Shown: one piece after another, positions 1 through 63,817 of the stretch | Layout: the number at the start of each line of letters is the position of its first letter | Position numbering within the stretch: the stretch's first letter is position 1 | Source: Chrysemys picta bellii | Lineage: Eukaryota | Length of the DNA stretch: 64,000 nucleotides | Assembly: GCF_011386835.1 (NCBI RefSeq) | Contig: NC_088803.1 | Coordinates: 17,670,001 to 17,734,000 of the forward strand | Direction of reading: 5' to 3' | Made by a program: the position numbers and the translations under genes | Notes under the pieces: generated by a model | Database searches by the model: none | Told to the model about the DNA's origin: nothing | What the model saw: only the letters and a program-made list of their open reading frames with translations

Positions 1-1777
1 AGGGATGGCTCGGCAGCCAGGGCCTCCAGCAGGTCCTCTCGGACCTCGTGATGCACCACGTAACGCTGGCGCACTGAGCGAAATGCCGCTTCCCAGCCGC
101 GCGGCTCCTCAGAGCTGGCCACTGTCAGGAAGGTCAGGATTCCCCAGTGGGGACAGGCCTGGAACCCGTAGCCGGCCTCCTCCAGGCGTCCCTTGAACTC
201 TCGCCGCACGACCGGGCTCTCGTCCACATAGCGAAGGAAAAGGGGGTGTTCTGGCCAGCAGAACCCCACGGCCTCTGTGGGGAGACAGGAAAACGGCTGG
301 GACCTGCCGGTGAGTCGGAGAGCCGGGAGGGGCCTGGCCCTGGGGGTTCGGGCACCCGACTGCCGTGGATTGTACAATGGGGGGGGCCAAGCTACATGGA
401 GGGGTTAGATACCTTTGAGTCCTTCTGAGATACCTCAAATGGCGCTGGGGGGCTCAGCAGATGGCGTTCTCCCCCAACAGTCAGTGCTGGCCCCATTGCA
501 ACACTAGGGGGCGCTGTGCGACAGGGAGCAGGACTTCAGCAGGGGGCGCTCTCCCCCTAGCAGTCAGGGCTCTGGTGGCGATGCAGCATTTCAATATGGC
601 TGGCCCTGGTGATTTGGGGAACTGGGGACACGCCCATCCTCCGGGAACCCAAGCAAGAGGTTGGCAGCTGCTGCCTTTGACGGCTCCCAGCCTGAGTCAC
701 ACAGCTGGTGCTGGGGCACGGCACCCACCCAGCTGCCTTCTGCCTCGGGTGGTGGGAGGCCAGGCGGGCTGCGAGTGGCGGGGGGTCCCCAGCAGGAGGC
801 GTCGCTACTGGGCCTGACAGGGGCGAGGCACAAGGAACCATCGGATTGGCGCTCCAGGACCAGCCCAGGAGGGCAGGCTCTGACCTCCGGCCCAGAGAAT
901 GCTCCCGGGCGGTGGGGAAACTGAGGCAGGGCCATGCATATTACTGTGAGTCTGGCTGTAAGTCAAGAGCACTGGAGCTGGGGGCCTATCAACTGTCACA
1001 GACCCCTGACCGTAACCCCCAGTGCCCCATGGCTGGAGAGACTCAGGGGGGTCGGCACTGCTCCTGGTGGTCCCATTTCTGAGAAGCACTGGGGAGCGGG
1101 GCCTGTGCCGGAGAGGACAAGGGGAGAGACGCTGCTGCAACCCGCTGAGCACAGAGGCCCCAAACCTAGCCACTATGGTGGGTCCAGCAGAGGGCGCCAG
1201 AGGCCGTGGAACGCAAGTAACGGCAAGGGGTCACCGGTATGACACTCAGCGCACCCGGGAGAGTCACGGGCTCTTACCAGCCGGAGTGCTAGGATCTTCA
1301 GCCACCTGCCAGGGAGGGCAAGAAAGGAGTCAGTTTATTTATGAGACACGCCCCTCCCAGAGCCGGGGATAGAACCCAGGAGTCCTGACTCCCAGCCTGC
1401 CCCCACCCCCGAGCTCTAACCATTAGACCCCAATTCCCCCCCTCCAAGGCCAGGGATGGAACCCAGGAGTCCTGCCCTGCAGCCTCCCACCCCTCCCCCA
1501 GGTGACCTGCCCCATTTACCGGGCAAGGAGCCGGCAGCCCCAGCGGGCAGACGATTTCCACCAGTTTCATCCAGGTGTTGGGCTGGTGCTCCAGGAAGCA
1601 GCTGATTTCCTCCAGCATGGCCAGCAGGGTCTGACCGGCCCCCAGCAGCGGGAAGGACACGGACTCCAGGAACGCGCCGTACACAGAACATAGGCAGCTT
1701 CGCACCATCTGGCGCATGACCTGCAGGGACCGAGAACAACGGGGGAATAGATTATGGAAATATGTAGGAAGATTCTC

Positions 1778-1826
<49 letters not shown>

Positions 1827-4737
1827 AGAGAAGTAAGCCGATATTCCTTCAGCGAGGCCTCCAGTTCTGGAAGTGGGAACTCGAGGAGAGAAGAGACAGA
1901 CGGGTGATGTCTGTCCGTTACGCGGCACCTAGCTGGCGACAGAGGCTACGAAACACAAGGTATTTAGGATTCGCTGCTATCTTAGCTTCAAGGATGACCT
2001 AACACCTTTTTTCCCTCGGCTTCATTAACCCGTGAGAACTCCCAGGCTTTTCTCTCCTGGAAGTCTCTATGGATGCCAGGGAAACAGGGAGCCCACAGGC
2101 AAGTTCTTTTGGTTTTCAAGACATATTTTTGCTTTTCAGAAACTGCCCATAGCAACGGCTTCAGTAAAAAGTTTCATTTTTGGCGGGGAAAAATTAGTTT
2201 TCAGAAACTGCTTCCAGCAAACCGGCTGCTTTTCAGTGACACCTCTGGGGGCTCAGCACAAATGTTCAGTTTACAAAACCTGCTGATGTTAAAACAAAAT
2301 GGTAAAACAATGGCTATTAACCAGGATGTTCAGGGATGGTGTCCCTAGCCTCTGTTTGTCAGGGGCTGGGAATGGGCGACAGGGGATGGATCACTTGATG
2401 ATTTCCTGTTCTGTTCATTCCCTCTGGGGCACCTGGCATTGGCCACTGTCGGAAGACAAGCTACTGGGCTAGATGGATCTTTGGTCTGACCCAGTATGGC
2501 CGTTCTTGTGTTCTTACATTCAGGTTTTCGTCAAAATTTTCAGTTTGGGGGGGGGGGGGGGGGATCCGTTTTGGGGAAAGAAAGACTTTCCGATTTTCCT
2601 AGGACTTAGAGAAAAGGAGGGTGGTGAAGCACTGGAATGGGTTACCTAGGGAAGTGGTGGAATCTCCATCCTTAGAGGTTTTTAAGGCCCGGCTTTACAA
2701 AGCCCTGGCTGGGATGATTTAGTTGGGGTTGTTCCTGCTTTGAGCAGGGGGCTGGACTAGATGACCTCCTGAGGTCCCTTCCAACCCTGATATTCTATGA
2801 TTCTATGAAAAGATTCTGAATTTCCCTAACAAACCAGATATGGTGGAGGGAAAATGTTTGCCACAACTTTACGGTTTATGGGCTTTTCTATGAAAAACTG
2901 AAATACATCAATTTCTCCAGGATGCTGTTTGGTTTGGAACAACGCTGGGTGGAGAACTGCCGACCCGCTCTAGAGAGTGATATTGCTGTACCAAGTGGTT
3001 TAGGAGCCTAAAGACAGAGTGGCGCCTCATTGGCCCTTAGACTTGCTAAGGCCTGTCTAGGCACCTAAACCCCTTGCTACGTCCTGTCCCAGGCATCTAG
3101 TAGAGCTGGGTAGCAGAGGGAGGGGGGGATCCAGGGGCTACAGCAGAGATAGGTGGCGTATGGGGTGGCCCCCCTTTACCTCTGGCGCCCCCTGCTGCTG
3201 CAGTGCCTCGCCATCCAGCTGCACAAGGTACAGCACTTTGCAGTGCAGATCCGGTAGGGCCGTGCCTGGCACCGTCAGCACCTTCCCCGGTTGGAGCTCC
3301 CCGCTGTGGCCTGCAGCTGCCAGCGCCCTCTCGGCCAGGGCCTGGACCTCCTGAGAGCACCACTGCAGCCCATCCGTCTCCAGCACCACCGGCAGCACCA
3401 GCACATCCGTCTGTCCCCAACACAGAGCCAAGGAGCGTGAACAGACGCTCGGACCGGCTCCTTGGGGGCTCACCGCTCCCCCCTCTGGGCCTGGGGACAA
3501 AGGCCCCGGGGGCTCCAAACAAGGTGAGCCCTAGAGAGACCGTCTTCCTACAGACTGGGAGAGAAGGTGCTAGGGATAGAACCCAGGAGTCCTGGCTCCC
3601 AGCCCCCTCCCTGCTCTAACCACTAGACACCACTCCCCTCCCAGTACCAGGGATAGAACCCAGGAGTCCTGGCTCCCAGCCCCCTCCCTGCTCTAACCAC
3701 TAAACCCCGCTCCCCTCCCACAGCCAGGAGAGAACCCAGGAGTCCTGGCTCCCAGCCCCCACTCTAACCAAGGCACTGACCTTCTGGCTGGCGAGGGACC
3801 CACTGACCACCTGGGTGCGGACTCTCTCCTGGGCCCGGAGGACATTCCTCAGCAGCTCCTGCCGGTTCTCGCCAAGCGGCCACCGCTTGGCACATGCCCT
3901 ATGCAAGGTGGCTACCAGGGCCCCATCAGCGGCCACCACGGAGATGCTGCTCAGGGGGGCGGCAGGGCAGCCCCGGGCGAAGGTGTCGATGGCCTCAGCC
4001 ACGGCCTCCACCAGCCACATGCTTTCCGAGTCCACACAGACGGCCACAGAGGTGACCTGCATCCGGGCCGCGGCCTCCAGGGTCAGGAGCACCGCCCCGG
4101 CTGCCAGTCCCCCAGCCCCCGGCGGGGAGCAGACTTCCAGGCAGGCGTGAGGAGCCCCTCGCCGGCTCAACGCCCTCCGGGTCACCACGCTGGCCCCGCT
4201 GTCCGGGCCGGACTCACCACCCAGCCTCACCACGGCGCCCGCCCGGATCCCAGCGCCGTCTCCCTCCCCGAGGCATAGGCTGATCCCTGGGCACGGCCGG
4301 AAGAACCAGCCCACCGAGGGCACTGCCCTGCCCACCAGGATCAGCAGCTCACTGATGGCCACTTTGGCAGCCAGCGCTGCCTCCCGGGGGCCAGAGAGGG
4401 CCAGGGTGCCAGCATCCCCCTGGCAGTGCCCGCTGGCCATCACCTGCCAGAGGGAGGGTGCCAGGACCTCCGAAAGCTGCTCCCACAGGTCCATCTCTGG
4501 CAGTGTAATGAACAAGGTCTCTGTGCATTGGGTTCCCGGGGGGGCTCCCTGTGGGCCCCGGTGGGTGGGTCTCAGCTCTGTCCTTGCCACAGGCCCCTCA
4601 GGGCACAGCATGGCCCTCTCCCCTGCCTTGGTATCGCTGGTGGGGGGCTGGAGGCACCGCCCAGCTCTGCCCCCGAGGGTCACCGGCGCACCAAGCTTGC
4701 TTGAGAGTCGTCCCCAGACGGCCAAGACGGGTCCCAT
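1..4737 (-). CDS. PARP14/PARP9-like macro-KH-WWE-ART gene, left copy, 5' part (runs off the window start). Exons 4737-3781, 3410-3180, 1720-~1515, 274-<1
   Basis: Spliced translation gives a KH-like segment ([22 protein letters not shown]) and two degenerate macro domains ([19 protein letters not shown]...[19 protein letters not shown]; [10 protein letters not shown]|TDVLVLPV...LHCKVLYLV|[10 protein letters not shown]...[10 protein letters not shown]...LEEISCF). These lead into the large exon [23 protein letters not shown] sites flank the exons and no stops are visible. The donor of the third exon is uncertain, and an upstream coding exon cannot be excluded. Confidence 0.7.
1778..1826 (+). 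repeat. (TCTA)n microsatellite; paralogue at ~49024-49076
   Basis: Directly visible tetranucleotide run. Confidence 0.97.
2311..2516 (+). mobile_element. 3' end of a CR1-type LINE or CR1-tailed SINE (turtle type); paralogue at ~49561-49765
   Basis: Ends ...gggctagatggatctttggtctgacccagtatggccgttcttgtgttctta, the 3' tail typical of turtle CR1/Pol III SINEs as I recall it. Confidence 0.75.
2618..2807 (+). mobile_element. CR1 LINE 3' fragment; paralogue at ~49862-50051
   Basis: gtgaagcactggaatgggttacctagggaagtggtggaatctccatccttagaggttttt...gaggtcccttccaaccct followed by the (attctatg)2 tail. Confidence 0.88.
3561..3770 (-). repeat. Tandem array of a ~70-bp tRNA/SINE-head-like unit
   Basis: Three copies of gggatagaacccaggagtcctggctcccagcccc...ctctaaccacta, the reverse complement of tagtggttagag...gggagccaggactcctgggttctatccc. 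Confidence 0.8.
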
Positions 4738-13604: not shown

Positions 13605-13757
13605 CAGGAGGGCTGAGGGGGAGCAGACAGAGCAGGACCTCTCAGGCTTATCGGCTGTTGGGAGGTTGCAAGCCCTATACAGCCCTGTATGGCTGGGGGG
13701 GAGGGGGGAATAGAAATTGGTTCACTTTTGGAGAGCTAGCAAATGTTTGCCCAGGGG

Positions 13758-13844
13758 ATATATTAGCCTCCAGACACTCTGGTCTTTACAAGTGACGATG
13801 AGCAGGCAATGCAATTCTCGGCATGTGCCGCGGCGTACGCAAAT
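13758..13844 (-). promoter_or_regulatory. Type-3 Pol III (H1/RPPH1-like) promoter, left copy, partly degenerate
   Basis: On the minus strand: ATTTGCGT (octamer variant), an SPH-like cacatgccgagaattgca, TCATCGTCACTTGTAAAG (PSE-like), then TAATATAT, all within ~90 bp and head-to-head with PARP2. Confidence 0.7.
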
Positions 13845-13899
13845 CGCCCCCCTTTCACGTCTTCACGCGAAGTGGGGATCTAGGGGGCTCCCGCCCCCC

Positions 13900-14175
13900 C
13901 ATACTCCCAGCATGCACCGCGCCCGCTATGCAAATGACCCTGCTCCGCCCGCCAATGAGTGTCGCCGAGCGGCGAGCCCCGTGTGTGTCTCACATAGTAC
14001 CATGCGCGCCTACCAGCTAGGGGCGGGGCTCCGGCTCCTCCACGCCCGCGACCGGCCAGGGCAGGGGACGGGGCAAATGCAAAGGAGCGATATGCAAATG
14101 AGGATGGGCTGCGCGAGAGTTTGGTTCCCGGAACGTTGCCTGGAGCGTGGGCGGGTGGGAGCCGCCGCTCCCAGG
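13900..14175 (+). promoter_or_regulatory. Probable PARP2 promoter and first exon (donor ccag|gtgcgg near 14174)
   Basis: CpG-rich. Contains SBS motif actcccagcatgcaccgcg (~13903), octamers ATGCAAAT (~13928, ~14091) and GC boxes. Confidence 0.55.
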
Positions 14176-15229
14176 TGCGGGGAGGAGAACCCTAGGGGGG
14201 GTGCAGTGGGGGAAGGGTGCAGGGAGAGGTTGGGTTGTAAGGGTGTGGGGGAGCAGGGGAGTAGTGAGGGAGGGGTTCAGGGGGCCTCTAGGGGGTGCAA
14301 TGGGGTGGGAAACATTGGAAGAGGTGCAGGCGTGGTTGGGGGGTGCAATGGGGCTGGGGTTGCAGTGGGGGAGGTCGGGGGGGGTGCAATGGGTCGGGGG
14401 GGTTCAATGGGTCAGGGTTACAGTGGGGGGGGGTGCAACAGGGCTGGGGTTGCAGTGGTGGTCTGGGGGCATGCAAGGGGGGACGGGGTGCTCTGGGAGT
14501 CCCCGGAAGTGGGGGTGTTCTGGGAGCAGGGAGTTAGGGTCAAGGGGGGAAAACGCGAAGGGTTAGGATATTGCATTGAGGGCGGGGGGCTGTGGGGAAC
14601 GCAGTGGGGCCTGGAGCTGTTGCAGAGTCCCAGCGGGGGAGGGAACTGGTTCATGGAGTGCTACATAGATCATGGTGGGATGGTCCATATAAGGCTGTGA
14701 GAGTGGGCAGGGAGGAACATGCTCATTCATATAGGGCTGTGTCGCCCTGGGGATCTGCTGGTACATACAGGGCTGTGTGGATCTCTATAGGGTGGTCTGT
14801 ATAGGGTGATCGTGGGGGGGTGCTGATCCATACAAAACTGTATGAATTGCTGTAGGTTGGTCAGTATAGGGTTATATGGCGGGGGGGGGGTAAGAAGCTA
14901 TATGGATTGCAGTAGAATGGCCCATATGGGGTTCTATGACCTGAGGGGGTGGGGTTGTGCTGGTACATACTGGGCTATATGGATCTTGGTAGGATGGTCT
15001 GTATAGGGCTATATGTCCTGGGTGGGTGCTGGTTCTTACACAGCTGTATGGATGGCAGTAGAATGGTCTGTATGGGGCTATATGGCCTGGGATGTGTGTG
15101 TACTGGTCCATACAGGCTGTATGGATTTCAGTAGGATGATCTGTATGGGGCTATATAGCTTGGGGATCACAGTCTGTGGATCCCTGCCTCCCTTCTCTCT
15201 GCTCGCCAGCCCCGCTTGTCACTCCCAGG

Positions 15230-18200
15230 ATGAGGCAGAAGCAGAGGGCAGCCGAGGCGGGGGGTGCGGGCCTGGCACTGGAGCTGCGCTGGGAGTGGCA
15301 GGACTCCGGCGGCACCTGGCATCGCTTCGTGCCTGAGCAGAGCGAGGTGCTGACACAGGCAGCCAGGTGAGTGCCCTGGGGGTGGGGGGGTGTCGTTGCT
15401 CGGGCTATGGTGGGGGAGTCACAGGCTCTGAGCCGTGTCCATCTCCCCCCAGGGCAGGGAAGCCCAGCGTGGCTGTGGGTTCCCGCGTGGATCTGCGGCG
15501 GATGGTGCAGCGGGATGGACAGACGGGGCAGGACAGATGTGTGGCAGCCGCTGTCCAGGACCAGGACTCCTGTGAGTGCCCAGGGCCCCCTGGTGGGGGG
15601 AGCAGTGTCGTCCCGGATGCCTGGGTCCCACGCCCTGTCCTGATCACTCCCCCGAGTATGGGGCACCCTAGGGGTCAGCACCCTGCTGTGCTGCCCAGAC
15701 ACCTGTGTCCTATGCCCACTCGCCGTCACTGCCCCAGAGGCTGGGAGCTGTGGGGCCCCCGGGGGTGAACGCCCTGCTCAGCCACCTGGACACCTGGGTC
15801 CGATGCCCCATCACCATCACTGCCCCAGAGGCTGGGAGCTGCAGGGTTAGCGCTGGCAGGGAGCTAACAGGATGCCCGTGGCCCAGATTTCATGTGGTGC
15901 TGGCAGGGGGACGAAGAGGGGCAGTGGCTGCCCTACCCTGCCGATACCTGCCTGGCGCTGGAGCGAGCGCGGCGCGGCGACGGGGGGCCCAGCCTAGAGG
16001 TGACGTTCAGCCGGACCCGCTACACATTGGACACGGCACAGATGACCCAGACCAACATCAGAACTGGGTACCAGCGCCGGATGGAGCGGAGGGAGTCAGG
16101 TACTCCTGGGTTCTCTCCCTGGCTTTGTGAGGGGAGTGGGGCCTAGTGGGTAAAGCGGGCTCTGTGGGAAGCTGGGGGAAGGGGTTCAGGCTCCCAGGGC
16201 CCAGCTCCGGTTGGTGAGCAGGTCTCGGGCACCTGGGGCGGGGCAGGCCTTGCTGCCAGAGTGTAAGCTCGTTAGTCATTAATCATCCCCCAGGGAGCTC
16301 GGAGGAGAATCTGACGCCAGGCACAGCTGGGTCACAGCGACAACGCACAGGGTGGCTTGCCTGGTGCTGAGATGCGGCCATCTCTGGGGTGTGGCACTCT
16401 CCCCCTCTCACCCATGGCCTCTCTCCACAGACGCTGTGGATGATGATGGGGGATCTGAGCCCAGCTCCGTCCCTGGCTCCTCGTCCCCCCAACGGCCCCC
16501 AGCGCCGAAGAGACCCCGGGATGGGGGGGCCAGCCCCAACCCCGGAGCCGGGGAAGAGAGCACAGGTGAGGGGTGGCGAACTACAGCACCCCTGGTCTGC
16601 CGGCCTCTCTCTGCCAGCTGTTTGTTCCAACCTTGGTTTTCTGGCTCTGCCCCCTTCCAATAGATTACCATCTAAAACAGGGGCGGGCAAACTTTTTGGC
16701 CTGAGGGCCACATCAGGTTTGTAAATTGTATGGAGGGCCGGTTAGGGGAGGGGGTCATGGCCTGGCCCCCACCTCCTATCTGCCCCCCCACCCCCTGGAC
16801 TCCTGCCCCATACAACCCTCCCTGTTCCCTGATGGACCCCCTGGGACCCCTGCCCCATCCATACACCCCTGCTCCCTGTCCCCTGACCGCCCCCAGATCC
16901 CCGCCGCCCCATGCAACCCCTCTTCTCGTTCCTGACGGCCCCCCTGGGACTCCTGCCCCATCCACCTTCTTCCTGTCCCCTTACTGCCCCTGGAACCCCT
17001 GCCCCTGACTGCCTCCGACTACCCCGTGCCGCCCCATCCAGCACCCCCCCCCGACTGCCCCCCTCAGGACCCCGCCCCCATTCAACCCCTTATTCCCCCC
17101 CCACCCCCTGACCACCACCCTGAACTCCCCTGCCCTCTATCCAACCCCCCCTGCCCCCATACCGCGCTGCCTGGAGCATCGGTGGCTGGCGGTGCTACCG
17201 CCACGCCGCCGCCACTGCGCAGCACAGAGACCAGGTCAGGCCAGGCTCTGCAGCTGCGCTGCCCCAGGAGCTCACAGCTCTGCCGCCCAGAGCATTGTGC
17301 TGGTGGCGGAGCGAGCGAGCTGAGGCTTTGGGGGGAGAACAGTGGAGGAGGGGCTGGAGGCTAGCCTCCCCGGGCCAGGAGCTCGGGGGCCAGGCAGGAC
17401 GGTCCCGTGGGCCGGATGTGGCCCGGCGACGATGTGTGCAGATCTACCAGTTAGCCAGTTTTTAATCCGTGTGTCAGGCACTTTGTCACTAGCCCACAGC
17501 GCTCGGTTTTCAGTCGGGTCACACGGTGCCAAGTCGCACAGCATATAAAGTTCCCTGTATCGACGAAACCCGTAACGTCACCAACGGATGAGATCAGCTT
17601 TGTTTGTTTTCCGTGAAGCCTGCCTGGCCTTGCTGAAGTTCCTGGGCTTTAACCTGGGATTGCTTGAATCCCGCATCAGCTTTTGTGTTATTCTTCCCGG
17701 GCTTTTCGTCAGGCTAACTGGCCTAAAGCTACACACTCATCCGCTCTTCAGGAATGTTCCCTCTATCCCGGGTTGATTTCAGATGAATGCCAGCAGGTCA
17801 GAGATAATCTCAGCCAGCTCTTTTGCGACTCGGGGCTGCGAGTTAGGCAGCCAAGCTGATTTGGAAACGGGTGTGATTTATAAGTGCCTCCCCTATCCTG
17901 CGCTAGGAGTGCGTGATGTCGGCCTTGGGCGCTGCTGGTTCCTCGTGGCTGCCTGGGAAGGGGCCCGTGGCGTGGCTGGAGCTCTGTTGTTCCTCGAGCA
18001 CCAGGCCCTACCTTGGCTCAGGTCCCTAGGATCCCTGCACTGATATCTCTTAAATCCTCTCCCCACCCCCATTTCTGTCTGTCACCCCCAGAGGTCATCA
18101 AGACCCTGATTGTGAAGGGGAAGGCGCCGGTGGATCCAGAGTGCTTGGCTAAACTGGGGAAGGTAACGCAAGACCTCCTGCCCCGGGGGTCTCCAGTCCC

Positions 18201-21200
18201 CACCCCCCTAAACCAGCCAATGCCTGCCCTGGGGCGGGATTGGGGCCAGCGCCCCCTAGAGGGGAAAAGCCCCATGCCCCGTTCCCTGTCCCCTGAACCA
18301 GCCAGTCCCTGACCTGGGGTGGGATCAGAGCCAGCCCCCCTAGAGAGGAAAAGCCCCACATCCCTGAGACAGCCAGTCCCCACTGGGGTGGGATTGGGGC
18401 CAATGCCCCTAGAGGGGACTTCCTCACACCCCATCCCTTCCCAGGGCCGGCTGCGGCTCAGGAAGTGCCCATTTCCCCCCAGGCCCACATATACTGTGAA
18501 GGGGACGACGTCTACGACGTGATGCTCAACCAGGTGAGTGTGGTGCTGTGGCACTCCTGGCCGGGAGAGCCACCCGCTCAGGAGCTGGGGGAAGGGGGGC
18601 TGCTGCGGGCAGAGACCCCCCCCAGCCCTGTCCCTGACGCCCAGCCCCCGGTCTGTCCATCCGTCCCGCAGACCAACCTCCAGTTCAACAACAACAAGTT
18701 CTACGTCCTACAGCTACTGGAGGACGATGGGCCGCAGAGCTACAGCGTCTGGACGCGCTGGGGGCGCGGTGAGCAGGGTGGGGGCCATGGAGGGCTGGGT
18801 GAGTGTCGTGGGGCACTCCTGCATGGGGGAGGGAGCTGGATGTGTGTGGCCAGGGGCTAGGGTGTGGCAGGGGGCTGGGTGCATGGCAGGGGTTGGGGGG
18901 GCAGAGCAGTGTCCCCCATCACCACATCTGTCCTGTCCCTGCAGTGGGGCGGCCAGGCCAACACGCGCTGGTGTCCTGCGCTGGGGACCTTGCCCAGGCC
19001 AAGGAGATCTTCACTAAGAAGTGAGTCCCCCCCTCCCCCCAAACCCCTTGGAGCCTGCCCCCTCCTCGCCTCCCTCTCCGGTCTCTCCCCAGGTTCCTAG
19101 ACAAGACCAAAAACCACTGGGCCGAGCGGTGCAACTTCCAGAAAGTGCCTGGCAAGTACGACCTGCTGCACATGGACAGCCGGCCCCCCGTGAGTGTGAC
19201 ACCCCCCCCTTAGAGCCCCCCCATACGACCTGCACAAGGACAGCTGGCCTCATGTCCCCCAACACATAACCCCCTGCCCCATATTACCTGCACATGGATC
19301 CTGAAGCCCACGCAGGCCCCCCAGCTCATGTGGAGAAGCAGTGGGCCCTGTGTCCCACCTCCATGGGAGCATTGCAGGGTGGCAGGATGGGGGTGCTCTG
19401 GGTATGGCTGGGAGACCCAGTAACAACCCCCACCCCCCCCGCCCAGGCCGCAGAGCCGAGCTGCGCGGGGGCCTCCCAGCCCAAACCAGCCTCACGACTG
19501 GACCCCCGAGTGCAGGCGCTGCTGGGGCTGATCTGCGACCTGCAGGCCATGGAGGAGATTGTGCTGGAGATGAAGTATGACACCAAGAAGGCTCCTCTCG
19601 GTGAGCCCCCCATGGGCGTGTAGGGGAGGGATTGGGGGTGGCGGGGGCCGGCAGATCTGGGCTGTGGTTGAGAGGGTTCTGGGGTGCAGGGGATCTGGCG
19701 GGAGTCAGGGGGCTCCTGGGGGGTCCCAGGCGCTGGTGGTTCTGACCCGCTCCCCCCAGGGAAGCTGACGGTGGAGCAGATCCGTGCTGGGTTCCAGTCA
19801 CTGCAGAAGGTGGAGGCGGTTCTGCGGGCCGGGGACACTGGACGGGCCCTGCTGGAAGCCTGCAACGAGTTCTACACCCGTGTGCCCCATGACTTTGGGT
19901 CAGTGCCCCCAAGTGCCCCCCCCCGCACCTCCCCCCGAGTGTCGCTCCCAGCATGCTCCGCCGTGCCGAGTGTCCCCCGCCCGCTCCGAGCACCTCCTGC
20001 CTAGGGTTGCCAACTTTCTAATTGCACAAAACCAAACACCCTTGTTCCACCCCTCCTCTGAGGCCCTGCCTCTGCTCACTCCATCCCCCCTCCCTCTGTT
20101 GCTCACTCTCCCCACCCTCACTCACTTTCACTGGGCTAAGGCAGGGGGTTGGGGTACAGGGGGTGTGAGGGCTCTGGGGCTGGGCCAGGTATGAGGGGTT
20201 TGGAGTGCAGGAGGGGACTCTGGACTGGGGCAGGGGGGTTCGGAGGGCAGGGGGTTGGAGCGTGGGGGGGTGAGGGCTCCAGCTGGGGGTGCGGGCTCTG
20301 GGGCAGAGCTGGGTATTAGGGGTTTGGGGTGCAGGAGGGTGCTCTGGGCTGGGATCGAAGGGTTTGGAGGGTGAGAGGGGGATCAGGGCTGGGGCAGGGG
20401 GTTGGGGCGTGGGGGTGCAGGCTCCGGGTGATGCTCACTTCAGGCAGCTCCCGGAAGCAGTGGCATGTTCCCCCTCTGGCTCCTACGTGGAGGCACAGCC
20501 AGGCGGCTCTATGCACTGCTCTGTCTGCAGGCGTTGCTCCCGCAGCTCCCATTGGTCGGGAACCACAGTGCTTGGGGCGGGAGCAGCGTGTAGAGCCCCC
20601 TGGCTGCCCCAATGCCTAGGAGCTGGACGGGGGACATGCCATTGCCTCCGGGAACCGCGTGGAGCCTGCCTTAGCTTCGCTGTGCCGCCAGCCGGACTTT
20701 TAATGGCCCTTCCAGCAGTGGTAACTGGAGCTGCCAGGGTCCCTTTTCGACTGGGTGTTCCGGTCAACAACCGGACACCTGGCAACCCTACCCCTGCCCC
20801 TCCAAGCACCCCCTACCCTGCCCTGCTCTGCGTCCTCGCTGGGGCTCTAGGTCCCCCCCACTCCCCCTAGGCCTGGCTCACTCTGCTTCTCTCCCCCCCA
20901 CACACACACCCAGGCTTCGGACACCCCCATTGATCCGGACGTGGCAGGAGCTTCAGGAGAAGGTGCAGCTGCTGGAGGTGAGCGGGGGGAGGTGGGAAAT
21001 CTGTCCCTCCATCTCTCTGTCTGTCCATCCCCCTCTGACTCCTCCCACCCCCCAGGCCCTGGGTGAGATCCAGATCGCCATCAAGCTGGCACGCTTGGAG
21101 CTGCATGGCCAGGAGCACCCGCTGGACCGAAGCTACCGCACGCTGGGCTGTGAGCTCCACCCCCTGGAGCGGGACTCTGCCCACTTCCAGGTCGGGGGGC

Positions 21201-23481
21201 TGCGAGGGGCCAGCAGTGGGGAAGCTGGGGGGCAGGGTGGGTTGGGGAGTAGTGGGGAGCAGTGTAGGTTAGGGGGGCGGGCAAGGGGGACAGTGTGGGG
21301 CTGGGGAGGCCAGGTGAGGGGGCAGTGACCAGGGGCATGTGGCGGGGGGGAGCGGGGGCTGAAAAAGGCCAGGCGGGTGGGGAGGGGGGCAGGGCTGGGG
21401 TTAGCTCACGCCCCACAGCTCCCTCCAGGTGCTGGAGCGGTACCTGCTCTCCACCCATGCGCCCACCCACCGTGACTACTCCATGGAGCTGCTGGAGGCT
21501 TTCACCCTGCGCCGGGCCGGCGAGCCCCCCTTCCGCGCCAGCCTGTCCAACCGGTGAGGGGCTGGGGGGAGTGATCTAGGGGCCTGGGGGGCATCCTGGG
21601 GGCAGGAGCAGCTGGGGGGGCCCAGGGATGGGAACAGGTGGGTTTGTCCTGCACCTGGTGGGTTACATCTGTGCAACCAGACTGCCCCCCCTCCTCCCGG
21701 CTCTGTCAGCTCCCTCCCAGCATTGCCCCCCCCACACTCCTCCGAGCTAAGTGAACCCTTCTGCTTCAGTGCCAGGCACAGGGGAAACTAAGGCACACAG
21801 CGGCAGAGTAAAAGTGTTAGACAATTCACGCTTGGTCACAGAAGGAGAGTCCGGTGGGGTGGGGGTTGGATCCCAGCCAGTAAAGGGGCTGGGTACTGCG
21901 GGGAACGGGGGAGGCTGGGCATGGGGCTCACCCTCTCCCTTTTTCCCCCCAGGACGTTGCTGTGGCATGGCTCCCGGCTGGGCAACTGGGTGGGGATCCT
22001 GAGCCAGGGGCTGCGAGTGGCACCCCCTGAGGCCCCCGTCACCGGCTACATGGTGAGACACCCCCCCCCCCTTGTCCGCAGCTGCCTGCCTTTTCCTCCT
22101 CGACCCTTTCCCAGCTCCCTCCCCCTCAGCCAGTCTAATCCCTCACCACCCCCCATCTCTCACCCCCAGTTTGGGAAGGGCATTTACTTCGCAGACATGT
22201 CGTCCAAGAGCGCCAATTACTGCTTCGCCTCACGCCAGCGCGACGTGGGCCTGCTGCTGCTGTGTGAGGTGAGTGCCACCCCAGAGCCAACTGCATCTCG
22301 GAGAGCGATCCTGGCCCAGAGCACCTGGCTTCATGTCTGGCTCTGGAAGGGGAGTCGGGTCCTGGGGTTAGAACAGGACGGGGCTGGGTTCTCTTCCCGC
22401 TCTGGGCAGGACGCACAGGCAGCTGTGGACTTGGTGCCCCTCTCCTGTTGCAGGTGGCCCTGGGTGAGTGCCAGGAGCTGCTGGAGGCGAATGCCGAGGC
22501 CGGGAAGCTGCCGCCCGGGAAGCACAGCACCAAGGGGCTGGGGAAGCTGGCACCCGCTCCCACCAATAGCATCATGCTGTGAGTACTGGAGAGGGGGCAG
22601 GGCTGGCAGCCCATGGTGCTTGCCCTGAGTGACGGAGGCCCCGGGGGGGACAGCATGAGGGGAAAGCTCTGCCCCCTGGCACGATGCCACAGTCCGTCCC
22701 CCCCCCAGCCCCTTCGCAGCTGCTCAGTGGAGACTCGCTTGGCCCCAGGAGAGGCTGGTTTGTGGGACTCTCCTGGGACCCCCCCAGTTTTTCATGCCCT
22801 CAGGCAAGACACTTGGAGCCAGCGTGGACCTTCAGGGTAGGCAGAGCTGCCCCCCCTCTGCCCCCAGGGAAATCTGTGCCTGCTCCAGCCCCCCCCCCCC
22901 CCCGGTACCGCCCAACAGGCCGGTCCTGCAGCCCCCCCACCGTGGTTTGGTTCCAGGCCCAGAGGAGAAATAGCCGTGTCGCGTTTGAACAGCCCGGCGC
23001 CAACCCAGCTGCCAGCTCAGGGCAGGGGGTGAAGGCCGGCAAGGGGAGAACCCGGCCTGTGGGTGCAGATCCTGCCCGCCCACTGCAGCGCGTCAAGCAG
23101 AGCTAGGTGCTCGGCCCCCAGGGTGCCCCTCCCCAGCCCGTCGCGGCTGCTGCTCGGTGCCAGCCGGCTGGGGGGGGGAGGGGGGGCTCCGGGAAAAGAG
23201 CAGCAAATCTATGCAGCCCAGGAGCCATGCGTGCCTGGCGCTGCCCCCCAGAATGAGAGAGAACCAGGCATCTGGGGGGTTGAGCTACCCTCGCCCTGAC
23301 CTCCGCCTCGTCTCCCCCCAGGGATGGGGCTGCAGTGCCGCTGGGCCCAGCCGTGGAGACGGGCGTGACGAACCCCCACGGCTACACCCTCAACTACAAC
23401 GAGTTCGTCGTCTACGACCCGGGCCAGGTGCGGATGCGCTACCTGCTCCAAGTGCGCTTCAGCTTCGCCCCGCTGTGGTGA
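15230..23481 (+). CDS. PARP2: PARP2 with N-terminal tandem WWE domains (WWE-WWE-linker/NLS-WGR-regulatory-catalytic), 18 coding exons, 698 aa. Exons: 15230-15366, 15453-15571, 15887-16099, 16431-16565, 18092-18162, 18483-18533, 18672-18768, 18945-19020, 19093-19189, 19447-19600, 19760-19898, 20914-20977, 21056-21190, 21429-21553, 21953-22052, 22170-22268, 22454-22578, 23322-23481
   Basis: Exons translate to PARP2-like sequence: [64 protein letters not shown]; [14 protein letters not shown]; [19 protein letters not shown]; [18 protein letters not shown]; [10 protein letters not shown]. The H-Y-E triad is intact. All splice phases are compatible (total 2097 nt). Linkage of the four WWE/linker exons to the rest is inferred from phase and order. 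Confidence 0.92.
16678..17418. mobile_element. hAT-type MITE whose right end is deleted in this copy; complete paralogue at 58770-59540
   Basis: Left terminus caggggcgggcaaac. The paralogue ends gtttgcccacctctg and has an 8-bp TSD, ATCTAAAA. Confidence 0.75.
17440..17560 (-). mobile_element. Old CR1 ORF2 (reverse transcriptase) remnant; paralogue at ~59770-59880
   Basis: Minus-strand translation DLAPCD...[10 protein letters not shown] resembles the CR1 RT segment DLVPHD...WIKNWLT.RSQ. Confidence 0.45.
20002..20790. mobile_element. hAT-type non-autonomous DNA transposon in a PARP2 intron; paralogue at 62254-63043
   Basis: TIRs tagggttgcca...tggcaacccta. Flanks ctcctgcc and cccctgcc (7/8, an 8-bp TSD). 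Confidence 0.85.
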
Positions 23482-31399: not shown

Positions 31400-33185
31400 C
31401 CCCCCACCTCCCAATGCCCATCTCACAGCATGGCTGCCCCACGCCTGCCCCACACCGCCCCCTAGTGCCCATTTCACAGCACAGCCGACCCACGCCTGCC
31501 CTACACCGCCCCCTAGTGCCCAACACACCACACCGCCCCCTAGTGCCCATCTCACAGCACGGCCGGCCCACACTTCCCCCTAGTGCCCATCTCACAGCAC
31601 AGCCGCCCCACACCGCCCTCTAGTGCCCAACACACCGCACTGCCGCCCCACACTGCCCCCTAGTGCCCAACACACCGCACTGCTGCCCCACACCATCCCC
31701 TAGTGCCCATCTCCCAGCATGGCTGCCCCACGCCTGCCCCACACTGCCCCCTAGTGCCCATCTCACAGCGCAGCCGGCCCACACCGCCCCCTAGTGCCCA
31801 TCTCACCGCATTGCTGCCCCACAACCACCCCTAGTGCCCATCTCACAGCATGGCTGCCCCACGCCTGCCCCACACTGCCCCCTAGTGCCCATCTCACAGC
31901 ATGGCTGCCCCACGCCTGCCCCACACTGCCCCCTAGTGCCCATCTCACAGCGCGGCCGGCCCACACCGCCCCCTAGTGCCCAACACACCGCACTGCCGCC
32001 CCACACCACCCGCTAGTGCCCAACACACCGCACTGCTGCCCCACACCATCCCCTAGTGCCCATCTCCCTGCATGGCTGCCCCACGCCTGCCCCACACTGC
32101 CCCCTAGTGCCCATCTCACAGCACGGCCGGCCCACACTTCCCCCTAGTGCCCATCTCACAGCACAGCCGCCCCACACCGCCCTCTAGTGCCCAACACACC
32201 GCACTGCCGCCCCACACTGCCCCCTAGTGCCCAACACACCGCACTGCTGCCCCACACCATCCCCTAGTGCCCATCTCCCAGCATGGCTGCCCCACGCCTG
32301 CCCCACACTGCCCCCTAGTGCCCATCTCACAGCACGGCCGGCCCACACTTCCCCCTAGTGCCCATCTCACAGCACAGCCGCCCCACACCGCCCTCTAGTG
32401 CCCAACACACCGCACTGCCGCCCCACACTGCCCCCTAGTACCCAACACACCGCACTGCTGCCCCACACCATCCCCTAGTGCCCATCTCCCAGCATGGCTG
32501 CCCCACGCCTGCCCCACACTGCCCCCTAGTGCCCATCTCACAGCATGGCTGCCCCACGCCTGCCCCGCATGGCCCCCTAGTGCCCATCTCACAGCGCGGC
32601 CGGCCCACACCGCCCCCTAGTGCCCATCTCACCGCATTGCTGCCCCACAACCACCCCTAGTGCCCATCTCACAGCATGGCTGCCCCACGCCTGCCCCACA
32701 CTGCCCCCTAGTGCCCATCTCACAGCATGGCTGCCCCACGCCTGCCCCACACTGCCCCGTAGTGCCCATCTCACAGCGCGGCCGGCCCACACCGCCCCCT
32801 AGTGCCCAACACACCGCACTGCCGCCCCACACCACCCGCTAGTGCCCATCTCACAGCACAGCCACCCCTCACCGCCCCCTAGTGCCCAACACACCGCAAT
32901 GCCGCCCCACACTGCCCCCTAGTGCCCATCTCACAGCATGGCTGCCCCACACCACCCCCTAGTGCCCATCTCACAGCACAGCCGCCCCACACAGCCACCT
33001 AGTGCCCAACACACCGCACGCCTGCCCCACACCGCCCCCTAGTGCCCAACACACCGCACTGCCGCCCCACACTACCCCCTAGTGCCCATCTCACAGCACA
33101 GCCACCCCACACCGCCCCCTAGTGCCCAACACACCGCACGGCTGCCCAACACTGCCCCCTAGTGCCCATCTCACAGCACACACAC
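31400..33185 (+). repeat. ~1.8-kb GC-rich minisatellite (~38-41-bp units) in a TEP1 intron
   Basis: Dozens of units anchored on cccctagtgccca(tct/aca)ca. Larger blocks recur, for example 31763-31966 and 32589-32792 (826-bp offset). Confidence 0.97.
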
Positions 33186-49023: not shown

Positions 49024-49077
<54 letters not shown>

Positions 49078-56819: not shown

Positions 56820-56907
56820 ATATATAAGCCTCCCAGACACTCTGGTCTTTACAAGTGACGGTGAGCAGGTGATGCAATTCGCGGCATGTGCCGCGGCGTA
56901 TGCAAAT
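56820..56907 (-). promoter_or_regulatory. Type-3 Pol III (H1/RPPH1-like) promoter, right copy, consensus-like
   Basis: On the minus strand: ATTTGCAT (56907-56900), an SPH-like motif, TCACCGTCACTTGTAAAG (56864-56847), a 19-bp spacer, then TTATATAT (56827-56820). Confidence 0.8.
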
Positions 56908-57328: not shown

Positions 57329-60300
57329 GTGAGGCGGAAACAGAGGGCAGCCGAGGCGGGGGGCGCGGGCCTGACACTGGAGCTGCGCTGGGAGTGGCAG
57401 GACTCCGGCGGCACCTGGCATCGCTTCGTGCCTGAGCAGAGCGAGGTGCTGACACAGGCGGCCAGGTGAGTGCCCTGGGGGCGGGGGGAGTGTCGTGGCT
57501 CGGGCTATGGTGGGGGAGTCACAGGCTCTGAGCCGTGTCCATCTACCCCCAGGGCAGGGAAGCCCAGCGTGGCTGTGGGTTCCCGCGTGGACCTGCGGCG
57601 GATGGTGCAGTGGGATGGACAGATGGGGCAGGACAGATGTGTGGCAGCCGCTTTCCAGGACCAGGACTCCTGTGAGTGCCCAGGGGGGAGCAGTGTCGTC
57701 CTGGATGCCTGGGTCCCACCCCTGTCTTGATCACTCCCCCGAATTATGGGGCCCCCTAGGGGTCAGCACCCTGCTGTGCTGCTCGGACACCTGTGTCCTA
57801 TGCCCAGTCGCCGTCACTGCCCCAGAGGCTGGGAGCTGTGGGGCCCCCGGGGGTGAACGCCCTGCTCAGCCACCTGGACACCTGGGTCCGATGCCCCATC
57901 ACCATCACTGCCCCAGAGGCTGGGAGCTGCAGGGTTAGCGCTGGCAGGGAGCTAACAGGATGCCCGCGGCCCAGATTTTGTGTGGTGCTGGCAGGGGGAC
58001 GAAGAGGGGCAGTGGCTGCCCTACCCTGCCGATACCTGCCTGGCGCTGGAGCGAGCGTGGCGTGGCGACGGGGGTCCCAGCCTAGAGGTGACGTTCAGCC
58101 GGACCCGCTACATATTGGACACGGCACAGATGACCCAGACCAACATCAGAACTGGGTACCAGCGCCGGATGGAGCGGAGGGAGTCAGGTACTCCTGGATT
58201 CTCTCCCTGGCTTTGTGAGGGGAGTGGGGCCTAGTGCGTAAAGCGGGCTCTGTGGGAAGCTGGGGGAAGGGGTTCAGGCTCCCAGGGCCCAGCTCCGGTT
58301 GGTGAGCAGGTCTCGGGCACCTGGGGCGGGGCAGGCCTTGCTGCCAGAGTGTAAGCTCGTTAGTCATTAATCATCCCCCAGGGAGCTGGGAGGAGAATCG
58401 GACGCCAGGCACAGCTGGGTCACAGCGACCACGCACAGGGTGGCTTGCCTGGTGCTGAGATGCGGCCATCTCTGGGGTGTGGCACCCTCCCCTCCCCCTC
58501 TGACCCGTGGCCTCTCTCCACAGACGCTGTGGATGATGATGGGGGATCTGAGCCCAGCTCCATCCCTGGCTCCTCGTCCCCCCAACGGCCCCAGCGCCGA
58601 AGAGACCCCGGGATGCGGGGGCCAGCCCCAACCCCAGAGCCAGGGGAGAGACCACAGGTGAGGGGTGGCGAACTACAGCACCCGTGGTCTGCCGGCCTCT
58701 CTCTGCCAGCTGTTTGTTCCAGCCCTGGTTTTCTGGCTCTGCCCCCTTCCAATAGATTAGTATCTAAAACAGGGGCGGGCAAACTTTTTGGCCTGAGGGC
58801 CACATCAGGTTTGTAAATTGTATGGAGGGCCGGTTAGGGGAAGGGGTCATGGCCTGGCCCCCACCTCCTATCTGCCCCCCCACCCCCCAGACTCCTGCCC
58901 CATCCAACCTCCCCTGTTCCCTGACGGACCCCCTGGAACCCCTGCCCCATCCATACACCCCTGTCCCCTGACCGCCCCCAGACCCCCGCTGCCTCATGCA
59001 ACCCCTCCTCTCATTCCTGATGGCCCCCCTGGGACTCCTGCCCCATCCACCCACCCCTTCTTCCTGTCCCCTTACTGCCCCTGGAACGCCTGCCACTGAC
59101 TGCCTCCGACTACCCCCTGCCGCCCCATCCAGCACCCCTCCCTGACTGCCCCCCTCAGGACCCCGCCCCCATTCAACCCCCTATTCCCCCCCCACCCCCT
59201 GACCACCACCCTGAACTCCTCTGCCCTCTATCCAACTTCACCTGCCCCCATACCGCGCTGCCTGGAGCATCGGTGGCTGGCGGTGCTACAGCCACGCCGC
59301 CGCCACTGCGCAGCACAGAGACCAGGTCAGGCCAGGCTCTGCAGCTGCGCTGCCCCAGGAGCTCACAGCTCTGCCGCCCAGAGCATTGTGCTGGTGGCGG
59401 AGCGAGCGAGCTGAGGCTTTGGGGGGAGAACAGTGGAGGAGGGGCTGGAGGCTAGCCTCCCCGGGCCAGGAGCTCGGGGGCCAGGCAGGACGGTCCCGTG
59501 GGCCGGATGTGGCCCGCGGGCCATAGTTTGCCCACCTCTGATCTAAAAGGTGTGCCCAGGAATCCTAGCTGCCCCTCCCCACCACACCACCCGCCTTGCT
59601 GCTCCTAGAGGAGTCACTTCACATTGGCTCGTGCTCAGCCTTATTCTGTGCAGCCGCCGAGCGATCCAGGGTGCCAGGCGCCACCTTGGCATCACTTCCG
59701 CCTCCGCCAGCCGGCGTCGCCGACAAAAACATCCTGGCTACAACGATTCCCCAGCGGCGACGATGTGTGGGGATCTATCAGTTAGCCAGTTTTTAATCCG
59801 TGTGTCAGGCACTTTGTCACTAGCCCACAGCACTCGGTTTTCAGTCGGGTCACACGGTGCCAAGTGGCACAGCATATAAAGTTCCCTGTATCAACGAAAC
59901 CCATAACGTCACCAACAGATGAGATCAGCTTTGTTTGTTTTCCGTGAAGCCTGCCTGGCCTTGCTGAAGTTCCTGTGCTTTAACCTGGGATTGCTTGAAT
60001 CTCGCGTCAGCTTTTGTGTTGTTCTTCCCGGGCTTTTCGTCAGGCTAACTGGCCTAAAGCTACACACTTGCGCCGCACTCATCCGCTCTTCAGAAATGTT
60101 CCCTCTATCCCGGGGTTGATTTCAGATGAATGCCAGCAGGTCAGAGATAATCTCAGCCAGCTCTTTTGCGACTCGGGGCTGCGAGTTAGGCAGCCAAGCT
60201 GATTTGGAAACGGGTGTGATTTATAAGCGCCTTCCCTATCCTGCGCTAGGAGTGCGTGACGTCGGCCTTGGACGCTGCTGGCTCCTCGTGGCTGCCTGAG

Positions 60301-63300
60301 AAGGGGCCCGTGGCGTGGCTGGAGCTCTGTTGTTCCTCGAGCACCAGGCCCTACCTTGGCTCAGGTCCCTAGGATCCCTGCACTGATATCTCTTAAATCC
60401 TCTCCCCACCCCCATTTCTGTCTGTCACCCCCAGAGGTCATCAAGACCCTGATTGTGAAGGGGAAGGCGCCGGTGGATCCCGAGTGCTTGGCTAAACTGG
60501 GGAAGGTAACACAAGACCTCCTGCCCCGGGGGTCTCCAGTCCCCACCCCCCTGAACCAGCCAATGCCTGCCCTGGGGCGGGATTGGGGCCAGCGCCCCCT
60601 AGAGGGGAAAAGGCCCACATCCCTGAGACAGCCAGTCCCCACTGGGGTGGGATTGGGGCCAATGCCCCTAGAGGGGACTTCCTCACATCCCATCCCTTCC
60701 CAGGGCCGGCTGCGGCTCAGGAAGTGCCCATTTCCCCCCAGGCCCACATTTACTGTGAAGGGGACGACGTCTACGACGTGATGCTCAACCAGGTGAGTGT
60801 GGCGCTGTGGCACTCCTGGCCGGGAGAGCCACCCGCTCAGGAGCTGGGGGAAGTGGGGCTGCTGCGGGCAGAGACCCCCCAACCCTGTCCCTGGCGCCCA
60901 GCCCCCCGTCTGTCCATCCGTCCCGCAGACCAACCTCCAGTTCAACAACAACAAGTTCTACGTCCTACAGCTCCTGGAGGATGATGGGCCGCGGAGCTAC
61001 AGCGTCTGGACGCGCTGGGGGCGCGGTGAGCAGGGTGGGGGCCATGGGGGGCTGGGTGAGTGTCGTGGGGCACTCCTGCATGGGGGAGGGAGCTGGATGT
61101 GTGTGGCCAGGGGCTAGGGTGTGGCAGGGGGCTGGGTGCATGGCAGGGGTTGGGGGGGCAGAGCAGTGTCCCCCATCACCACATCTGTCCTGTCCCTGCA
61201 GTGGGGCGGCCAGGCCAGCACGCGCTGGTGTCCTGCGCTGGGGACCTTGCCCAGGCCAAGGAGATCTTCACTAAGAAGTGAGTCCCCCTCTCCCCCCAAA
61301 CCCCTTGGAGCCTGCCCCCTCCTCGCCTCCCTCTCCGGTCTCTCCCCAGATTCCTAGACAAGACCAAAAACCACTGGGCCGAGCGGTGCAACTTCCAGAA
61401 AGTGCCTGGCAAGTACGACCTGCTGCACATGGACAGCTGGCCCCCCGTGAGTGTGACACCCCCCCTTACAGCCCCCCCATACGACCTGCACAAGGACAGC
61501 TGGCCTCGTGACCCCCTACACATAGCCCCCTGCCCCATATTACCTGCACATGGATCCTGAAGCCCACGCAGGCCCCCCAGCTCATGTGGAGAAGCAGTGG
61601 GCCCTGTGTCCCACCTCCATGGGAGCATTGCAGGGTGGCAGAATGGGGGTGCTCTGGGTACGGCTGGGAGATCCAGTAACAACCCCCCCCCCCCCCCGCC
61701 CAGGCCGCAGAGCTGCGCGGGGGCCTCCCAGCCCAAACCAGCCTCACGACTGGACCCCCGAGTGCAGGCGCTGCTGGGGCTGATCTGCGACCTGCAGGCC
61801 ATGGAGGAGATTGTGCTGGAGATGAAGTATGACACCAAGAAGGCTCCTCTCGGTGAGCCCCCCATGGGCGTGTAGGGGAGGGATTGGGGGTGGCGGGGGC
61901 CGGCAGATCTGGGCTGTGGTTGAGAGGGTTCTGGGGTGCAGGGGATCTGGCGGGAGTCAGGGGGCTCCTGGGGGGTCCCAGGCGCTGGTGGTTCTGACCC
62001 GCTCCCCCCAGGGAAGCTGACGGTGGAGCAGATCCGTGCTGGGTTCCAGTCACTGCAGAAGGTGGAGGCGGTTCTGCGGGCCGGGGACACTGGACGGGCC
62101 CTGCTGGAAGCCTGCAACGAGTTCTACACTCGTGTGCCCCATGACTTTGGGTCAGTGCCCCCAAGTGCCCCCCCCCGCTCCTCCCCCCGAGTGTCGCTCC
62201 CAGCATGCTCCGCCGTGCCGAGTGTCCCCCGCCCGCTCCGAGCGCCTCCTGCCTAGGGTTGCCAACTTTCTACTTGCACAAAACCAAACACCCTTGTCCC
62301 ACCCCTCCTCTGAGGCCCTGCCCCTGCTCACTCCATCCCCCCCTCCCTCTGTTGCTCACTCTCCCCACCCTCACTCACTTTCACTAGGCTAAGGCAGGGG
62401 GTTGGGGTACAGGGGGTGTGAGGGCTCTGGGGCTGGGCCAGGTATGAGGGGTTTGGAGTGCAGGAGGGGACTCTGGACTGGGGCACGGGGGTTCGGAGGG
62501 CAGGGGGTTGGAGCGTGGGGGGGTGAGGGCTCCAGCTGGGGGTGCGGGCTCTGGGGCAGAGCTGGGTATTAGGGGTTTGGGGTGCAGGAGGGTGCTCTGG
62601 GCTGGGATCGAAGGGTTTGGAGGGTGAGAGGGGGATCAGGGCTGGGGCAGGGGGTTGGGGCGTGGGGGTGCAGGCTCCGGGTGATGCTCACTTCAAGCAG
62701 CTCCCGGAAGCAGTGGCATGTTCCCCCTCTGGCTCCTACGTGGAGGCGCAGCCAGGCGGCTCTATGCACTGCCCTGTCTGCAGGCGTTGCTCCCGCAGCT
62801 CCCATTGGTCGGGAACCACAGTGCTTGGGGCGGGAGCAGCGTACAGAGCCCCCTGGCTGCCCCAATGCCTAGGAGCTGGACGGGGGACATGCCACTGCCT
62901 CCGGGAACCGCGTGAAGCCTGCCTTAGCTTCGCTGTGCCGCCAGCCGGACTTTTAATGGCCCTTCCAGCAGTGGTAACTGGAGCTGCCAGGGTCCCTTTT
63001 CGACTGGGTGTTCCGGTCAACAACCGGACACCTGGCAACCCTACCCCTGCCCCTCCAAGCACCCCCTACCCTGCCCTGCTCTGCGTCCTCGCTGGGGCTC
63101 TAGGTCCCCCCCCACTCCCCCTAGGCCTGGCTCACTCTGCTTCTCTCCCCCCCACACACACACCCAGGCTTTGGACACCCCCATTGATCTGGACGTGGCA
63201 GGAGCTTCAGGAGAAGGTGCAGCTGCTGGAGGTGAGCGGGGGGAGGTGGGAAATCTGTCCCTCCATCTCTCTGTCTGTCCATCCCACTCTGACCCCTGAC

Positions 63301-63813
63301 TCCCCCCACCCCCCAGGCCCTGGGCGAGATCCAGCTCGCCATCAAGCTGGTGCGCTTGGAGCTGCATGGCCAGGAGCACCCGCTGGACCGGAGCTACCGC
63401 ACGCTGGGCTGTGAGCTCCACCCCCTGGAGCGGGACTCTGCCCACTTCCAGTTTGGGGGGCTGCGAGGGGCCAGCAGTGGGGAAGCTGGGGAGCAGGGTG
63501 GGTTGGGGAGTGGTGGGGAGCAGTGTAGGCTAGTGGGGTGGGCAAGGGGGACAATGTGGGGCTGGGGAGGCCAGGTGAGGGGGCAGTGACCAGGGGCATG
63601 TGGGGTGGGGGAGCGGGGGCTGAAAAAGGCCAGGCGGGTGGGGAGGGGGGCAGGGCTGGGGTTGGCTCACGCCCCACAGCTCCCCCCAGGTGCTGGAGCG
63701 GTACCTGCTCTCCACCCATGCGCCCACCCACTGTGACTACTCCATGGAGCTGCTGGAGGTTTCACCCTGAGCCGGGCCGGCGAGCCCCCCTTCCGCGCCA
63801 GCCTGTCCAACCG
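57329..63813 (+). pseudogene. PARP2: Disabled copy of WWE-PARP2, interrupted by an LTR at the window end
   Basis: ATG>GTG at 57329; 1-bp deletion near 58590; 5-bp deletion near 61710; donor GT>TT at 63452; 1-bp deletion near 63758; promoter and first exon deleted; LTR begins at 63818. Confidence 0.92.
58770..59540. mobile_element. Complete hAT-type MITE with 8-bp TSD ATCTAAAA
   Basis: caggggcgggcaaac...gtttgcccacctctg flanked by atctaaaa on both sides. Confidence 0.88.
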
Positions 63814-63817
63814 GTGA

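Follow-up and report, generated by a model that had tools for sequence, protein, structure and literature searches.

The gene for PARP2 in Chrysemys picta bellii most likely encodes a functional enzyme in the ancestral metazoan architecture, in which two WWE domains (WWE1 and WWE2) and a linker with a nuclear localisation signal (NLS) precede the WGR, regulatory helical, and ADP-ribosyltransferase domains, and in which WWE2 is expected to bind PAR; we put the probability of this reading at roughly 0.85. The gene lies in a stretch of 64,000 nucleotides, which was analysed as a whole and is called the window here, and a single mRNA encodes the tandem WWE domains, the NLS linker, and the complete PARP2 core. 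PARP2 with WWE domains is already known: it is the ordinary ancestral form, annotated in RefSeq for the same species and published in 2014. Our additions are modest and concern the timing of the loss of the WWE pair, which is restricted to placental mammals, the derivation of the placental N-terminus from a tip and a linker, the states of the individual pocket residues, and a pseudogene copy.

Exons 1 to 4 have canonical AG/GT splice sites, and the open reading frame from the ATG at 15230 runs in frame into the exon that starts at 18092, as an earlier sequence-only reading of this DNA had proposed for the splicing of the WWE exons onto the WGR region. The canonical product (from this ATG to 23481) has 698 amino acid residues and 18 coding exons (Table 1). 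In this product, Pfam placed two WWE domains at residues 21-153, WGR at 236-315 (86.2 bits), PARP_reg at 348-478 (135.2 bits), and PARP at 492-692 (232 bits), in the order found in PARP2. The H-Y-E motifs are legible in the translation (His in L-W-H-G-S-R, Tyr in G-I-Y-F-A-D, and Glu in Y-N-E-F-V-V-Y); we take them to be the catalytic triad, which was placed by motif and not by structural alignment. The RefSeq isoforms X6, X8, and X14 of Chrysemys picta bellii poly [ADP-ribose] polymerase 2, and one further RefSeq model named LOC101947346, share 100% identity with the spliced N-terminus. Isoforms X6, X7, and X8 have 88 extra N-terminal residues, which were mapped to 13912-14175 by tblastn. Among the 120 listed matches of the WGR-to-catalytic region, those named by their source were all PARP2 or generic 'poly [ADP-ribose] polymerase', and no entry was named PARP1 or PARP3; the identity to placental and marsupial PARP2 was 62-70%. 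Judged by its sequence, the turtle gene is an orthologue of PARP2, a clade 1 DNA-repair PARP.

Table 1. Features of the PARP2 gene and of its duplicated copy (window coordinates)
Feature	Position	Strand	Evidence
5' exon, non-coding or alternative N-terminal	13700..14174	+	GT..AG joint 14174/15210, one RNA contig, one run
Coding exon 1: ATG and first half of WWE1 (W-E-W motif, helix)	15230..15366	+	WWE 22.3 bits alone
Coding exon 2: second half of WWE1	15453..15571	+	joint 15366/15453, 4/4 runs
Coding exon 3: entire WWE2, 213 nt, symmetric phase	15887..16099	+	WWE 54.8 bits; joints 4/4 runs
Coding exon 4: acidic/Pro-rich disordered linker with K-R-P-R nuclear localisation motif, 135 nt	16431..16565	+	
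Coding exon 5: conserved lead-in to WGR, acceptor of 16565/18092	18092..18162	+	GT..AG, 4/4 runs
Remaining PARP2 coding exons, product end 23481	18484..23481	+	exact-match exon blocks; Pfam domains
Duplicated PARP2 copy (block B), unprocessed pseudogene	57329..63814	+	lost start, frameshifts

The lengths of exons 3 and 4 are both divisible by 3. In the databases, exon 3 is left out of isoforms of Chelonoidis and Eretmochelys (627 aa in both), and exon 4 is left out of Chrysemys X9; no joint skipping either exon was seen in the four RNA runs described below. The mammalian RPPH1 and PARP2 genes are head-to-head neighbours. The Rfam scan of the whole window gave no RNA family at the gathering score, and therefore no RNase P RNA lies beside PARP2 here.

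The WWE domains were called with Pfam PF02825 (gathering cut-off, 21.1 bits). WWE2, from exon 3 alone, scored 54.8 bits (E 1.2e-14, profile positions 2-67 of 67), WWE1, from the spliced exons 1 and 2, scored 40.6 bits (E 3.4e-10, positions 3-65 of 67), and the full protein contained two WWE stretches with 84.8 bits in total; thus, the assignment of both domains to these three exons stands. Exon 4 matched no Pfam family. In an AlphaFold2 model built from an alignment of 20 sequences, residues 21-160 were predicted with pLDDT of 91-98, and most of the linker (residues 164-205) was below 50. The description of exon 4 as an acidic, Pro-containing linker with an NLS-like motif agrees with this predicted disorder and with the K-R-P-R present in it. 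Both WWE domains have a strand-helix-strand topology in the predicted model, which fits the WWE fold of a six-strand half beta-barrel and one helix. As single domains, they fitted HUWE1 (6MIW) with a TM score of 0.84 and an rmsd of 1.7 A, the former figure being 0.83 for TRIP12 and 0.73 for RNF146; the superposition on HUWE1 is that of the predicted WWE2. The top ranks in Foldseek were the DTX1 tandem WWE (8R5N and 8R6A), Drosophila Deltex (2A90), and ZAP. Superposition of the whole tandem on DTX1 gave a TM score of only 0.37-0.45 and an rmsd of about 9 A; therefore, we do not claim a DTX1-like inter-domain geometry. In the profile search against PDB sequences, DTX1 was matched with E 9e-21, TRIP12 and HUWE1 with about 1e-10, and RNF146 with 7e-6.

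As a competent WWE domain we regarded one with an adenine-stacking Trp or Tyr, an adenine-pairing Gln, and a phosphate-contacting Tyr, Asn, and Arg. The roles of the corresponding HUWE1 residues in adenine stacking, adenine pairing, and phosphate contact are known from crystal structures (PMC11269756). In the HMMER alignment, W91, Y131, Q140, N142, and R149 of WWE2 correspond to W1619, Y1658, Q1667, N1669, and R1676 of HUWE1, so the binding-competent pattern attributed to WWE2 holds at all five contacts. These contacts are kept in 18-20 of the 20 species, from oyster to turtle, and the WWE2 pocket, as aligned, shows long-term constraint. The loop after the second Trp of WWE2 is acidic (G-D-E-E), like the loops of HUWE1 and TRIP12, which disfavour the distal phosphate of iso-ADP-ribose (PMC11269756). 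Because of this resemblance, the affinity of WWE2 for iso-ADPr may be modest, and binding of ADPr or PAR in the manner of HUWE1 or DTX1 is likelier than RNF146-like binding of iso-ADPr.

The sequence-only reading had described WWE1 as degenerate, which is correct only in part. WWE1 has three of the five contacts (W23, Q65, and R74); D67 replaces Asn, and the Tyr is absent. Across the 20 species the Trp is kept in 18, the Gln in 19, and the Arg mostly, and the Tyr is absent in every species, with Leu or Ile in its place in non-sauropsids. All sauropsids sampled have in common a 7-residue deletion that removes the Tyr position, and in turtles, the crocodile, and several lepidosaurs the pocket Asn is replaced by Asp. 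On the other side stand the clear profile score, the predicted pLDDT above 90, and the retained Trp, Gln, and Arg.

Comparison with known WWE proteins places the turtle pair nearest to Deltex/DTX1 (2A90, 8R5N, and 8R6A), which gave both the best profile match and the best fold match. Both have two WWE domains with a short linker between them, and the second domain of each retains the Trp, Gln, Tyr, and Arg of the pocket. In Deltex/DTX1, however, the WWE domains are carried on a RING-DTC ubiquitin ligase and not on a PARP, the predicted inter-domain orientation differs, and the turtle WWE1 is without the Tyr contact. HUWE1 has the same five ADPr-contact residues as WWE2. RNF146 holds the distal ribose-phosphate of iso-ADPr with Tyr107 and a basic loop, whereas the turtle WWE2 has a Trp at the equivalent position and an acidic loop; for this reason, nanomolar binding of iso-ADPr as in RNF146 is not expected for WWE2. 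PARP13/ZAP (7KZH and 7SZ2) also has a tandem WWE within a PARP-family protein, and only its second domain is ligand-competent, but it belongs to another PARP clade, an inactive catalytic domain follows, and the similarity is low (E 0.003-0.009).

The likeness to Deltex also bears on another role of the pair, namely, that it is mainly a module for protein-protein interaction or autoregulation and does not recruit the enzyme. It might bind a partner, or it might bind the automodification of PARP2 itself, leading to release or inhibition (negative feedback). The tandem WWE of Deltex binds Notch ankyrin repeats, the nearest solved relatives of the turtle pair are those of Deltex/DTX1, and WWE1 is strongly conserved although no species keeps its Tyr contact, which suggests a constraint other than ligand binding. 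We consider this explanation rather unlikely, as WWE2 keeps five nucleotide contacts over the distance from oyster to vertebrates, and the WWE domains of DTX1 themselves bind PAR and ADP.

If the turtle PARP2 does carry a PAR-binding WWE2, it could act as follows. WWE2, and perhaps WWE1 more weakly, would bind the ADP-ribose units of PAR in the manner of HUWE1 and DTX1. PAR at DNA lesions, laid mainly by PARP1, would tether PARP2 through the WWE domains, and the tethered PARP2 would be a secondary PARP whose role is to lengthen chains already present. In placental mammals the WWE pair is lost, and of the N-terminus only the Arg-rich tip and the basic linker are left. The tandem WWE of DTX1 binds an 11-mer PAR with a Kd of 340 nM. 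In human PARP2, which is without WWE domains, the N-terminal region still binds PAR and mediates a recruitment that needs the catalytic activity of PARP1 (PMC6089979). PAR-dependent recruitment through the WWE domains is plausible for the turtle PARP2. The feed-forward loop suggested in the sequence-only reading would not be a new property conferred by WWE domains, because such behaviour of the WWE-less human PARP2 has already been described. A canonical PAR reader in the ancestral PARP2 would give a simple structural rationale for the way in which PARP2 is led to lesions by the PAR that PARP1 has made. The placental enzyme, on which nearly all of the biochemistry of PARP2 and all pharmacology of PARP inhibitors have been done, is the derived, truncated form; marsupial or turtle PARP2 and human PARP2 make a natural comparison set for PAR reading, recruitment, and chain branching.

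We surveyed the distribution of the architecture by a full HMMER scan with WWE2, two word-indexed searches, Pfam scans, and name look-ups. The layout WWE-WWE-WGR-PARP_reg-PARP, annotated as PARP2, was found in more than 60 species. These include many turtles, Crocodylus, Alligator, the tuatara, and more than 25 squamates, as well as the frogs Ascaphus and Leptobrachium, the coelacanth, the whale shark, an electric ray, and the oyster Crassostrea gigas. The platypus, the echidna, and eight marsupials also carry the WWE pair, and every placental PARP2 among the matches listed (about 500-590 residues) has WGR, PARP_reg, and PARP only. Since the pair persists in monotremes and in the eight marsupials, its loss is confined to placental mammals. 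The scan of orthologues that the sequence-only reading had suggested thus gave a pair kept from oyster to marsupials and absent in the placentals listed, and its statement that mammalian PARP2 has a short basic N-terminus is true of placentals but not of monotremes and marsupials. That reading had offered the architecture as possibly new unless it was the documented norm outside mammals; it is the annotated norm outside placentals, and the novelty falls.

Perina et al. (2014, DNA Repair 23:4; PMC4245714) described the N-terminal WWE domain(s) of non-mammalian PARP2 homologues; the survey of Citarelli et al. (2010) placed WWE in PARP clades 2 and 3 only. In our literature search for PARP2, WWE, and marsupials, we found no paper that noted WWE-PARP2 in marsupials or monotremes; the literature searched speaks only of 'non-mammalian' PARP2. 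Compared with non-placental PARP2 (RefSeq/UniProt; PMC4245714), the turtle protein has an identical architecture, WWE-WWE-linker-WGR-PARP_reg-PARP, and no essential difference, and it agrees at 100% with the Chrysemys picta bellii PARP2 isoforms in RefSeq; its particular features are the sauropsid deletion in WWE1 and the Asp noted above. A Latimeria 'PARP2 isoform X4' and a Protopterus protein combine a PARP2-like WWE with a Myb/SANT-like DNA-binding domain (PF13837) and have no PARP core. They may represent a fusion with a domesticated transposase or a mis-joined gene model.

The placental PARP2 (human and mouse) has orthologous WGR, regulatory, and catalytic domains, together with a homologous Arg-rich tip and an NLS-bearing basic linker, and differs in that both WWE domains are missing. 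In the alignment of the N-termini, the first placental residues, M-A-A-R-R-R, correspond to the beginning of the platypus and marsupial proteins, and the rest of the placental sequence before the WGR lead-in pairs with the linker encoded by exon 4. About 140 residues, those of the WWE pair, are missing from the placental N-terminus, which aligns as an N-terminal tip plus a linker with the WWE pair gone. The placental A-K-K-T-R-R, which aligns with the turtle P-K-R-P-R, contains the mapped nuclear localisation signal of PARP2. On balance, we favour a single loss of the pair on the placental stem after the marsupial split, by a clean internal excision that would have fused the Arg-rich tip to the NLS linker, with the PAR binding of the human N-terminus either left over from the ancestral WWE reader or compensating for its loss. 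If this is true, non-placental PARP2 should differ from or exceed human PARP2 in PAR-dependent recruitment and branching.

The transcript evidence consisted of contigs from four public runs, from four studies and with three organism labels, mapped to 13700-18800. The four runs were taken as RNA by guess only; the contigs are spliced at GT..AG joints and are without introns, and therefore cDNA is implied. The joints 15366/15453, 15571/15887, 16099/16431, 16565/18092, 18162/18484, and 18535/18669 were each found in all four runs. The joint between exons 4 and 5 (16565/18092), which the sequence-only reading had singled out for a check in RNA, was present in spliced contigs of every run, at contig depths of 105-500. 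One contig of 963 nt covers exons 1-4 and 30 nt past the exon 4 junction, and another of 764 nt joins exon 3, exon 4, and the WGR exons (exons 3-7). The 5' ends were of two types: the upstream exon (13700-14174) spliced to 15210 in one run, and unspliced sequence from 14678/14898 into the ATG exon in three runs.

An alternative joint, 17796/18092, was seen in one contig of one run at a depth of 7.7, compared with 105 for 16565/18092 in the same run. It would allow the main functional turtle PARP2 to start from a first exon in intron 4 and to be without WWE domains, the mRNA with WWE domains being minor or read-through; from the ATG at 17785 in intron 4, the product would be without the WWE domains and the linker and would start three codons before the exon 5 junction. 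This is very unlikely, given the difference in depth and the absence of the joint from the other three runs, and we rejected the intron 4 first exon (window 17424-17796) as the main form because of its single low-depth contig. The turtle database entries without WWE were likewise rejected as alternative isoforms, being fragments that lack an initial Met. The proposal that the WWE exons are a separate upstream gene, joined to PARP2 by prediction alone, can practically be dismissed, as nothing but the long (1.5 kb), repeat-rich intron 4 speaks for it, whereas spliced contigs span the WWE2, linker, and WGR exons in four runs and the same fusion occurs in the more than 60 species, including the oyster. 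Within intron 4, the segment 16607-16777 had contig depths of 1700-3300 in all four runs, compared with about 100-500 on the exons, and resembles an interspersed repeat that is either highly transcribed or present in many copies; the contigs break at 17424.

The window contains a direct segmental duplication, in which positions 1-21557 match 47886-63817 with 94-97% identity; it includes the upstream macro-PARP region and PARP2. In the duplicated PARP2 (copy B), the start ATG is changed to GTG, and deletions of 1, 5, and 1 bp shift the reading frame in the counterparts of exon 4, the exon 19447-19602, and the exon 21432-21554, respectively. The divergence of copy B from the first copy is 2.56% in exons compared with 2.50% in introns, with 16 non-synonymous and 15 synonymous changes, and copy B runs into a repeat near the end of the window. 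By these sequence features, copy B is an unprocessed pseudogene. The first copy is intact, including the WWE exons, and this is the contrast expected under selection.

Position 15237 is G in all four RNA runs and A in the window, which gives Arg instead of Gln at codon 3. Arg is likewise found in copy B, Trachemys, and Chelydra, so the A of the window looks like a derived allele or a variant of the individual. We considered contamination of the RNA by the pseudogene copy and judge it unlikely, with 21 further differences lying outside the list: among the differences listed for the runs of one organism label, exon 1 shows 15237 A>G alone, and the other exon 1 changes specific to copy B, including the lost ATG, are absent among the differences listed. 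Elsewhere in the window, 31400-33180 and 41860-42700 are long, internally repetitive arrays, very GC-rich and strongly skewed, with many offset self-matches of 77-87% identity.
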